A DNA stretch of 64,000 bases from Salpingoeca rosetta. Taxonomy: Eukaryota > Protista > Choanoflagellata. A model generated the notes under the pieces. That model saw nothing but the letters and a program-made list of their open reading frames with translations, was not told where the DNA came from and made no database searches. How positions within the stretch are numbered: position 1 is the first letter of the stretch; every line of letters starts with the position of its first letter. The stretch spans positions 26,590-90,589 of the forward strand of contig JAWQFM010000010.1 in the NCBI GenBank assembly GCA_033442325.1, given 5' to 3'. Below are positions 15,728-21,716 of the stretch, one piece after another. A program made the translations under genes and the position numbers.

Positions 15728-18700
15728 CTATTTTGGGGTTGATGTGCGCACGCGGGACGAGCGACTTGCAACGCTGGATGCTCTGGAGCCGGACGCGTTT
15801 CCAGGCGTTCTCGTGCTGCGAGGGCGAGAGGTGGCATAATGGGGGCTGATTTGCGATGAAAACACACGCAGCTGTTGCAACTCTTGTTCCTGTTGGCACA
15901 CATGTGCGGCAGTCGTGGATGTGAACGTGAGTTAAGTGAAGGAGTGAAAATGATGGAGATTGACAATCGCTGACACTACAAACACCATACAAACACACAC
16001 AAACAAACAAGCAAACAAACAAACAAACAAACAAACAAACAAACAAACAAACAAACAAACAACAAGCAAACAAGCAAACAAGCAAACAAGCAAACAAGCA
16101 AACAAACAAACAAACAAAACCGCACGCATGCACACAAACACGCAACAAAGCACGATACAAACCCCTCTCCCAACACACACACACACACACACACACACAC
16201 ACACACACACACACACACACACACACACACACACACACACACACACACACAAACAAAACACGTACACACACCTGCGTCTTGATCTTCTGCCTGGCGAGGT
16301 TGAGGCTGTGCTGGGTGCGATCGAGAGCAAGGCTCGATTCCTGCAGCTTGATGCGCAGGTCGTCCGCCTCCTTGATCAGCTCAACATCAATGTCATCATC
16401 GCCAGTCGTTGACGCCGGGCCGACAGAGACGCGCCTGTGCACCATCTCCAGCTCCAACTGCCGCGTTCTCGCGCGCTCCGTCTGCAATTCGCCCTCCAGC
16501 TGCCCAACCCGATCAGCCAGCACGTCCCGCACCTCCTGCAGCTCGTGCTCCAGCCGCGAAATGACGCCCTCCCGGTGCTCCACCACCTGCCGCTGCTGCT
16601 GCGCCATCTGTCGGATGTGCTCCTCTGCAAGCTTGATCTGCCGCGTCAACTCGCCAACGGACGCCTGTTCTGACGCCGCGCTCGCGCCGTCGGTGCTCTC
16701 CCCAGCAGCAGCAGCCTTGAGCATGCGCTCGTTGTGCTCTGCCAGCATTGCCACCTGCGCCGCCAGCTCGTCACACCGCGTGGCCTTCATGTTCCGCTCC
16801 ACGATGAGGCCCTCCACCCGCCGCTTCAGCGCATCCGAGTGGGCCAAGGCATTGGACAGCTTCTGCTGCAGCCCCGCAATCTCGTGCGTGCTCCCTTCCG
16901 CCACCGTGCGCAGCTGCTCAAAGTCGCTCATGGGCACCACGTTCTCTGCCTGCTGCTGCTGCGCCTGTGCCAGGTCCTCCTGCACAGCGCTCAGCTGTTG
17001 CTGCAGCTCGGCCGTCTGCTTCTCGCCGTCCTCCGCCCGCTTCACCGCAGCCGCGTGCTGCTGGTGCAGGTACTCGTACGACTCCTGCCATCGCCGGCTG
17101 TTGTCTGCCGCGGCGTGCCTGTCCTGCTCAACCTGCTTCTTCAGCGCATCCACCTGCTGCTGCTGCCGCTGCGCCGTCTTCTGCTCGGCCACCAGCCGCT
17201 GCTCCAGCGCCTTGATCTTGGCCTGCGCCTTCTTTGTCTTCTCGCCGTCGCCCGTGGCTTCGTCCAGCTGCTTCTGCAGCGCATCCATCGACTTGCGCTC
17301 CAGCGTCAGCTGTTCCGTTCGCCGCGCCAGCTCCTTGCGCAGCTTTGCGCCCGCTGAGCCGCCAACGCACCGCCCCACCACCAGCTGCCCAACACACACA
17401 GCGGCAAGAACAGACGCCAACGCGAAGACGAGCGAGCAGGAGGACGGGACGCCCGCCGCTGCTGCAGAATCACGGAGCACGCTGTCGATGTTCATCCCAA
17501 ACACCACCAGATCACCATCCACGCCAACCAATCCGCCCAGCGTTGCCCCGCCAACACATGCAGTGGGGGCAGCACCTTGCTGCTGCTGCTGCTGCTGCTG
17601 CTGCTGCTGTTGCTGCGGTGACAGTTGTGGTGGCGGTTGTTGTTGCTGCGGTGGTAGTTGTTGGTGATGCGGTGGCAGTTGTTGATGATGTGGTTGTAGA
17701 AGTGGTTGTTCTTGTTCTTGCTCTTGTTGTTCATGTTGTTCCTGTTGTTCTTGTTGTTCCTGTTGTTCTTGTTCTTGTTCTTTTTGCTCGTCCTGCTGGT
17801 GCTGCTCGTCCTGCTGGTGCTGCTCGTCCTGCTGGTGCTGCTGTTGTTCCTGCTCCTGTGGTTCCTGTTGAAGCTGTTGAGGGATCTGCGGTTCGTGGTG
17901 CGCTGGGTGCTCGGGCTGTTGAAGACGGTGCTCGTCCGGTTGCCCTTCGACGTGCTGCTGTGCTTCCACCGCCTCTTCTTCCTCGTGAATCTGCGTTGCA
18001 TGCGGCACCACGCCCTCGCCACGCTCCGGCTCGCCCACGCCTCCTGTCTCTTGAGCTGTTGCACCGCCAGTGCTGCCAGTCTGTTCTGGGCTTGCTTCGC
18101 TGCCTCGCTGTTGCCCGACATCACCAATCATGTCCTGCTCCTGGTGGCCCTGCGCCTCTCCCTCCATCTGCTGCTGCTCCTGCTGCTGCTGCTGCTGCTG
18201 CTGCGAGTGGTCTGCTTGGTGGTGGTGATGGTGTTCGTGTCCTTCGCGCGCGGCCGCCACGTCCTCGGCCAATTCGTGTGGAGGGCGGCGGTGTCTGTAG
18301 GGTCGAACATACACACATACACGCACGCATACACACACACATACACACATGCAAGGTGAGCCGTGCTGTGTACGGGCGAGTCAGGCAGGGCAACAGTACG
18401 CACGTCATCGTGCACACATGCACAATGCACATTACGCACACTCACGACAATGGCGCACGCACGCACACGCGCACACGCACACATGTACACAAACACAAAC
18501 TTGCACAATCACACATACGCACGCACGAACAAACACCTGTTTCGGCGGTGGAAAGCAGAGGCGTCGAGCTGCGGGGGAATGGCGGCCGTTGCCCCCATGT
18601 CCTCGTTGGGGATCGTTTCCCCGAGCGACTCGGCCGTCGACGTGTCGATTTCATGCGACAGCTCTTCGTCCTGGCTGTCCTCATCGCCGCCCTGCACTAC

Positions 18701-21700: not shown

Positions 21701-21716
21701 AGATCCAGGCCCGCAT
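15728..21716 (-). CDS. TANGO1/MIA3-like ER membrane protein: signal peptide, MIA-type SH3, E/Q-rich luminal region with ShKT, TM, cytosolic coiled coils (6 exons: 21716-21489, 21202-21107, ~20796-20677, ~20481-18537, ~18295-16272, 15889-15728)
   Basis: [91 protein letters not shown] follows the MIA/OTOR/TANGO1 SH3 pattern (K.C.D.EC...I....AL.DY..PD.RF..F......V..K.....W.G.V....GYFP...V.E). [22 protein letters not shown] is followed by roughly 350 aa of coiled coil; last exon EQELQQLR...RTSTPK*. Confidence 0.75.
19830..20300 (-). repeat. Coding 24-nt tandem repeat (QEEEERLR / QEEEERKK units)
   Basis: Alternating CAGGAGGAAGAGGAGAGACTGAGA and CAGGAGGAAGAAGAAAGAAAGAAA units on the minus strand. 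Confidence 0.9.

Follow-up and report, generated by a model that had tools for sequence, protein, structure and literature searches.

Did a TANGO1-type system for exporting bulky cargo from the endoplasmic reticulum (ER) exist before there were animals? The question is raised by a minus-strand gene at 21716-15728 of a 64,000-nucleotide stretch of DNA from the choanoflagellate Salpingoeca rosetta (contig JAWQFM010000010.1, positions 26,590 to 90,589; hereafter the window), in which an original prediction, made from the sequence alone, had recognized the domain order of the cargo receptor TANGO1/MIA3. The premise of that prediction, that the family is generally treated as metazoan-specific, agrees with the literature, where the MIA/cTAGE/TANGO1 family is stated to be animal-only and its origin is tied to the demand for matrix secretion (PMC7829582, PMC10119292). 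Nothing in the literature we searched links TANGO1 to choanoflagellates, the single co-occurrence being an unrelated reference. The answer that we favor, with some confidence, is that the locus is one expressed S. rosetta gene for a 1524-residue type I membrane protein and that this protein belongs with the TANGO1/MIA family as a divergent relative of pre-animal origin. It is probably a pre-animal TANGO1-family member of variant build, filed as a variant rather than a plain member because the proline-rich domain is missing and a ShK domain and ER/K repeats have been added.

Gene structure and transcription

With junctions read from the sequence and assembled by script, the gene has six exons that together encode the 1524-residue product:

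21716-21489, minus strand: exon 1
21202-21107, minus strand: exon 2
20796-20676, minus strand: exon 3
20481-18537, minus strand: exon 4
18294-16272, minus strand: exon 5
15889-15728, minus strand: exon 6

All five introns are GT-AG and the reading frame is open across every junction; the introns are dense in microsatellites of the (GT)n and (GTTT)n kinds, as one would expect of eukaryotic DNA. The gene is present as a single copy in the S. rosetta assembly (55,448,948 bases in 68 contigs).

Is the whole of this model transcribed as one unit? We aligned two raw stranded RNA-seq runs and two contig sets to 15728-21716, listing splice joints that were carried by at least three reads. The intron 1 joint (21202/21489) was found in 13 and 8 reads of the two runs and in one contig from each of the two sets, so that for the exon 1 donor, GTACGT, the support totals 21 spliced reads plus two contigs. 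The joints of intron 2 (20796/21107; 29 and 18 reads, 47 together) and intron 3 (20481/20676; 39 and 22 reads, 61 together) were each likewise seen in a contig of both sets. The joints of introns 4 and 5 went unlisted because the overhangs are short. For intron 4 (18536-18295), the consensus of the loose read ends at 18537 agrees, once reverse-complemented, with the first 17 bases of exon 5; for intron 5, 20 reads have loose ends at 15892, and the reverse complement of their consensus gives the final bases of exon 5. RNA depth is 35-120 across exons 4-6, about 2 within intron 4 and zero at 15928-16127 in intron 5. First mates map almost exclusively to the plus strand, and the RNA therefore comes from the minus strand. 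All five junctions are thus supported by RNA and the gene is transcribed. The whole coding sequence (4.6 kb) is spanned by no single read or contig because its charged repeats break assemblies, and we infer the continuity of exons 1 to 6 on one molecule from the joints, the loose ends and the depth. The original prediction had supposed that the SH3 exons belong with those for the membrane and coiled-coil parts, and had named cDNA as the evidence that could separate them; RNA-seq joins them, by the 61 spliced reads at the exon 3-4 joint and the loose ends downstream of it, and the SH3 exons are therefore attached to the large exon.

Two places within exon 5, 17149-17172 and 17760-17830, have loose-ended reads and joints that go back on themselves, with C>T at 17760 on first-mate-minus reads. 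Most likely these reads come from other Q/E-repeat loci rather than from true isoforms.

Organization of the predicted protein

All of the elements that had been named from the sequence (signal peptide, SH3 domain split over exons 1 and 2, acidic lumenal region, hydrophobic segment with a transmembrane helix, and coiled coils) were found on the minus strand at the coordinates that had been given, as follows:

21639-21716, minus strand: start codon and signal peptide, residues 1-26 (Kyte-Doolittle maximum 2.37)
21489-21638, minus strand: SH3 part 1, residues 27-76, with the CX4C loop, RT loop and strands to WEGN; ends exon 1
21107-21202, minus strand: exon 2, residues 77-108, SH3 part 2 and conserved C-terminal extension (Pfam SH3_2, AlphaFold2 (AF2) model, splice joints)
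20676-20796, minus strand: exon 3, residues 109-148, Pro-rich linker and start of the charged helix (joints of 47 and 61 reads)
19517-20481, minus strand: first part of exon 4, residues 149-470, E/R/K/Q repeats (composition; continuous RNA depth)
19163-19261, minus strand: lumenal ShK-like domain, residues 556-588, four Cys (Pfam PF01549)
17577-19150, minus strand: acidic Q/H/P-rich lumenal stretch, residues 593-1036, net charge -77, interrupted by intron 4
17487-17576, minus strand: weakly hydrophobic Gly/Ala/Val stretch, residues 1037-1066 (Kyte-Doolittle maximum 1.42; contains Asp)
17361-17438, minus strand: transmembrane helix, residues 1083-1108 (Kyte-Doolittle maximum 2.54; helical in the AF2 model)
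16272-17360, minus strand: cytosolic coiled-coil region, residues 1109-1471, about 360 residues (AF2 helices; weak matches to rod-domain Pfam families)
15728-15889, minus strand: exon 6, end of the coiled coil, Ser/Arg-rich tail and stop codon (loose ends at intron 5)

The signal peptide was called by hydropathy and inspection, and a hydrophobic leader ahead of the Cys loop is also found in most of the environmental homologues (described below) that retain an N-terminus. The SH3 domain with its extensions occupies residues 27 to about 104, the exon 1/2 border falling at WEGN/IGGK. Between it and the membrane lies a lumenal spacer of about 930 residues (105-1036) that is Pro-rich at first (residues 105-122, the linker), then ER/K-charged, then rich in Q, H and acidic residues. 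The charged part (residues 123-470) repeats E, R, K and Q in units of about 16 residues, a pattern of the ER/K type, and has a net charge of -55; residues 149-470 are 43% E, 18% R, 15% Q and 10% K. One may speculate that this segment acts as a stiff spacer in the lumen. After a poly-Q and acidic stretch (residues 471-555) comes the ShK match (E 3.5e-5; 24.7 bits where the cut-off is 20.9), which covers profile positions 6-35 only and has four Cys, against the six of the full fold. Of the paired hydrophobic segments, one is a clear transmembrane helix and the other, upstream, is weak and contains Asp.

The SH3 domain

What kind of SH3 domain heads this protein? Against Pfam, the single exons leave SH3_2 below threshold; the spliced domain, as contained in the 168-residue reference protein considered below, matches it (E 2.8e-6; 27.4 bits where the cut-off is 21.8). 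The original prediction took the domain for MIA-type and held that a grouping with generic cytosolic SH3 domains would tell against this. As to the region before the SH3 core the prediction stands; as to the core itself, which scores no better with MIA than with generic SH3 domains, it is not fully supported, and the grouping comes out clean in neither direction.

The evidence from outside the core is specific. An N-terminal profile restricted to the first 31 columns, which opens with the CX4C loop and stops where the RT loop starts, had MIA as its single match across the PDB (ungapped, E 3e-4); the runner-up had an E of 1.3. In searches with the full SH3 profile, built from 16 family sequences, generic SH3 domains are covered over about positions 20-70, whereas MIA and TANGO1 align from position 4-5, Cys loop included, and the alignment of TANGO1 (7r3m) spans nearly the entire profile. 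The AF2 model of the SH3 protein (mean predicted local distance difference test score 77; 88-95 over the core) points the same way. Foldseek places MIA second, its 78 aligned columns being among the longest alignments listed. VIA-align places MIA first (Z 10.0, root-mean-square deviation 1.9 A, 72 residues, 31% identity), ahead of generic SH3 domains at Z 9.0-9.6 over 53-68 residues (mostly 54-60), and although a gap in Z of less than 1 leaves these ranks formally tied, the longer aligned span with MIA is the real difference.

Compared with GRB2, three of the five positions of the PxxP groove are substituted: the first Tyr of ALYDY by R, the ligand-binding Trp by M and the Tyr of the 3-10 helix by A. 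Polyproline II-binding residues are lost across the whole mia family (PMC10119292). The second disulfide is absent, with APDG in place of APDC and an extension that has no C-terminal Cys; it is missing from invertebrate TANGO1 too (PMC10119292). A core that is near canonical, an N-terminal addition specific to MIA/TANGO1 and a secretory location together fit a deep branch of the MOTH lineage.

Relatives in environmental DNA

Does the gene have relatives that inform its history? With exon 1 (53 residues) as query against 1.84 billion representatives, and an E threshold of 1e-3, we obtained 15 real matches of 51-88% identity, all of them short open reading frames (ORFs) with uninformative names from metagenome or Logan contigs. 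One further match was set aside as a low-complexity repeat, and an Atlas feature search with exon 1 returned no usable match. Both Cys and the motifs AISIVR and SKDG..WE are conserved among the homologues, and in several of them the ORF continues into an intron whose position, following WEG or WEA, is shared. S. rosetta is the sole identified source among these SH3 homologues.

Two of the environmental contigs carry more of the gene. The first, of 13 kb (L003; ENA ERZ27233573, contig k141_260543), encodes an SH3 domain 64-65% identical to that of S. rosetta and has, in order on one strand, SH3 exons 1 and 2 and a short charged exon resembling S. rosetta exon 3; a 946-residue ORF that combines a Thr-rich, mucin-like part with E/K/R-rich helices, followed by two ShK halves; an acidic Q-rich ORF that ends in a hydrophobic stretch, a transmembrane ORF and small coiled-coil ORFs; and a last ORF in which a coiled coil is followed by about 170 residues with at least four poly-Pro tracts and a stop. 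The ShK domain is thus conserved and colinear, and the pair of hydrophobic segments has a similar counterpart. On a gene model read from ORFs only, L003 apparently holds an orthologue with the complete TANGO1 order, proline-rich domain included. Judged from the identity of its SH3 domain, and because no sequenced animal lies within reach of the same search, its source would be a choanoflagellate or a close relative.

Between the SH3 domain and the charged helices, L003 has the long Thr-rich mucin-like stretch (3945-4700, plus strand) where S. rosetta has the short Pro-rich linker. Its neighboring genes give no guidance on taxonomy: no Pfam match was obtained, one has no match in the S. rosetta assembly and one is a low-complexity Ser/Pro sequence. 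The second contig (L007) has an intronless SH3 domain, then a ShK-like piece and charged repeats to the contig end. Directly upstream of this SH3 gene is a DNA ligase III-type gene (2048-5415, plus strand; zf-PARP, ligase A N/M/C and LIG3_BRCT domains), with a TPR-rich gene further upstream. Beyond the gene itself, neither contig shows synteny with the window.

The cytosolic half and its tail

The AF2 model predicts five long cytosolic helices of 62, 102, 74, 88 and 39 residues, and in the Atlas search the sole neighbors of the cytosolic part were generic coiled-coil families. The tail that follows (residues 1472-1524) has 53 residues, is Ser/Arg-rich and contains four Pro. The architecture claimed for this locus, that of TANGO1, therefore holds in part: the signal peptide, MIA-like SH3 domain, acidic lumenal region, transmembrane helix and coiled coils are real and transcribed, and in place of the proline-rich domain that binds Sec23 and Sec16 there is only the Ser/Arg tail. 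Could that domain have been split off? From the gene downstream to position 9000 there is no P-rich minus-strand ORF, and the proline-rich ORF of L003, used as a query, had no match in the S. rosetta assembly, so that no split-off partner gene is found by this query.

Common descent or convergence?

The likeness to TANGO1 might be convergent. The protein would then be a choanoflagellate-specific one of the secretory pathway or cell surface, with a cytosolic-type SH3 domain recruited independently behind a signal peptide and a role at the plasma membrane, extracellular matrix or theca, for instance as an adhesion or matrix receptor. We consider this unlikely, and the observations that favor it are also those that weigh against kinship with TANGO1. 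One of them is the SH3 core, for which generic cytosolic SH3 domains have a slight lead in score over MIA and a clear one over TANGO1: a single-sequence search of the PDB is led by GRB2 (3.5e-6) and cytosolic SH3 domains, with MIA at 0.0025 and TANGO1 7r3m at 0.03, and the full profile gives 4e-8 to 1e-6 for generic SH3 domains, 5e-7 for MIA and 3.6e-4 for TANGO1 7r3m. To this can be added the formal tie of the structural ranks. Convergence would nevertheless have to account for an extension before the core that matches MIA alone without a gap, for MIA as both the best and the longest structural match, and for the alignment of TANGO1 7r3m over nearly the whole profile. It would also have to explain the location of the domain, for to our knowledge the lumenal or secreted SH3 domains of eukaryotes otherwise belong to the MIA/TANGO1 family.

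The remaining points concern the rest of the protein and its relatives. The large searches reached no animal homologue: at E 1e-3 there was no animal TANGO1 or MIA among the 1.84 billion representatives with exon 1, and the full-profile search returned the same environmental family only, again with no animal MIA or TANGO1. The cytosolic half showed no sequence similarity to TANGO1/cTAGE5 or to anything else in two word-seeded searches. ShK domains are typical of extracellular proteins, and neither a ShK domain nor an ER/K helix is a known feature of TANGO1. In S. rosetta both the proline-rich domain and any cytosolic PPP motif are absent, which weakens a direct COPII link in this species; the orthologue in L003, the reading of which from ORFs tempers its weight, has a poly-Pro tail after its coiled coil and so completes the TANGO1 order, which argues against convergence.

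Public annotation and host

Why has a choanoflagellate protein of this kind gone unnoticed? An exhaustive search with exon 1 found 100% identity to PTSG_04298 (XP_004995197.1; UniProt F2U761) of Salpingoeca rosetta ATCC 50818, a protein of 168 residues named 'SH3 domain-containing protein' of which we found no mention in the literature searched. Its residues 1-148 are identical to exons 1-3 of our model; it then uses an alternative acceptor in intron 3 (20549) and stops after 20 further residues:

20488-20549, minus strand: terminal exon of PTSG_04298, inside intron 3 and outside the main transcript

No joint at acceptor 20549 reached the three-read listing threshold, against 61 reads at acceptor 20481. 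PTSG_04298 is truncated, and the short model is an annotation artefact. In two word-seeded searches (504-1603 and 224-714 residues) the transmembrane/coiled-coil half found no database protein, not even itself; this half thus appears to be absent from public proteomes at the lengths searched (224-1603 residues), which is no proof of its being unannotated. The public proteome, then, appears to hold just the SH3 head of the protein, and this would explain why its TANGO1-like build was not seen. The truncated annotation may be one reason why the family is described as animal-only.

Alternatively, the public annotation might be right in substance, PTSG_04298 being a small secreted MIA-like protein of 168 residues and the transmembrane/coiled-coil sequence lying on a separate transcript. 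A deposited model of that length does exist, and the repeats that break assemblies leave the 4.6-kb coding sequence without a single read or contig across it. This explanation is nonetheless very improbable given that 61 spliced reads and two contigs join exons 3 and 4 at 20481, that no joint is listed at 20549, that loose-end consensus joins exons 4-5 and 5-6, and that depth and strand are even along a gene whose frame is open across all junctions. Contamination of the assembly, or an animal origin of the contig that would make this an ordinary animal TANGO1, can be dismissed, for exons 1-3 encode the same residues as a RefSeq protein of S. rosetta that is placed on a 1.89-Mb contig, the searches turned up no animal protein close to it, 24 public runs of one organism are available from seven studies (the stretch is in 20 runs of six, and RNA reads of the seventh map to it), and a 40-nucleotide S. 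rosetta rpl36a homology-arm oligo, intron sequence included (Booth and King 2020 supplement, PMC7314544), has its one exact match elsewhere in the same assembly, so that the host is S. rosetta and the prediction of a non-animal genome was correct.

Proposed function

If the protein is a variant TANGO1-family member, how might it work? By analogy with TANGO1, it would sit in the ER membrane with its lumenal SH3 domain binding secretory cargo, and its cytosolic coiled coils would self-assemble at ER exit sites. S. rosetta would have lost or replaced the direct connection to Sec23/Sec16 that a proline-rich domain makes, whereas the organism from which L003 derives would have kept it. Would such a protein still localize? 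In C. elegans TNGL-1, localization to ER exit sites is abolished by removal of the coiled coil, stays intact without the two PPP motifs and is merely reduced without the proline-rich domain (10.1101/2024.07.15.603539), and therefore a family member that has no proline-rich domain could still localize. By the analogy with TANGO1, the protein may serve the export of bulky cargo. Possible cargo can be named, as collagen-repeat loci (Pfam Collagen triple-helix repeats) are abundant in the S. rosetta assembly, with open frames of up to 1931 residues in the dense clusters:

C1:2334765-2345616: collagen repeat cluster
C5:1927731-1935430: collagen repeat cluster
C22:492854-535298: collagen repeat cluster

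These clusters suggest that S. rosetta has large collagen-repeat proteins, which are possible bulky cargo for secretion. Our tentative proposal, which we hold with less assurance than the family assignment, is that a TANGO1-type machine consisting of a lumenal MOTH-like SH3 domain, a membrane anchor, a coiled-coil scaffold and an ancestral proline-rich COPII-binding tail was present in the ancestor that choanoflagellates and animals share, and that in S. rosetta it organizes the ER exit sites used by large matrix cargo, collagen-repeat proteins for example.

If these proposals are true, a TANGO1-type export system would have originated before animal multicellularity, and what has been seen as an animal innovation, the export of bulky cargo, would predate animals and be open to genetic dissection in a unicellular model. 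The animal-only gap would be at least partly an artefact of annotation, the public proteome having only the 168-residue 'SH3 domain-containing protein'. With CRISPR editing and a rosette/matrix phenotype available in S. rosetta, the ancestral role of TANGO1, and its role where the proline-rich domain is absent, would be directly testable.

Other features of the window

Just downstream of the 3' end of the gene, a long (GTT)n/(AAC)n microsatellite occupies some 280 bp (14660-14945) and gives rise to poly-N, poly-Q, poly-T, poly-L, poly-V and poly-C ORFs across the six frames. Among ten of the longest ORFs scanned elsewhere in the window, the sole clear Pfam domain was a C-terminal RING-H2 finger (zf-RING_2, E 9e-10):

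46982-48862, minus strand: ORF with the C-terminal RING-H2 finger

Comparison with known systems

The closest comparison is with TANGO1/MIA3 itself (Drosophila Tango1, human TANGO1 and TALI, C. elegans TNGL-1). Like these, the S. rosetta protein begins with a signal peptide and a lumenal SH3-like domain with a CX4C loop, continues with a low-complexity lumenal spacer of about 1000 residues and a transmembrane helix, here preceded by a stretch that is only weakly hydrophobic, and then has long cytosolic coiled coils; it shares a single disulfide with invertebrate TANGO1 (PMC10119292), and its L003 orthologue shares the C-terminal poly-Pro tail. Unlike them, it has a 53-residue Ser/Arg tail where the proline-rich domain would be, a lumen to which a charged repeat of ER/K type and a ShK domain belong, a cytosolic part without detectable sequence similarity, a non-animal host, and an SH3 core that is much nearer to canonical SH3 domains than are the MOTH domains of animals.

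With the cytosolic SH3 domains of GRB2, myosin I, beta-PIX and intersectin the likeness is one of core sequence and fold (the profile and Z scores given above), and the S. rosetta domain differs from them in its place behind a signal peptide, its Cys-loop N-terminal and conserved C-terminal extensions and the three substituted positions of five in the groove. MIA and OTOR (PDB 1i1j, 1hjd) are the best structural match and the sole PDB family matched by the Cys-loop extension, and both they and the S. rosetta protein are secretory. MIA, however, has about 130 residues, two disulfides and no membrane anchor, whereas here the domain heads a membrane protein of 1524 residues. The gene therefore does not encode a stand-alone secreted MOTH protein of about 130 residues, its SH3 exons being joined by RNA to exons 4-6. 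A comparison can also be made with the sponge Amphimedon, a deep-branching lineage for which databases list one protein with the lumenal SH3 part and another with the cytoplasmic part (PMC7829582). In S. rosetta such a split is an artefact of annotation, because RNA reads join the parts.

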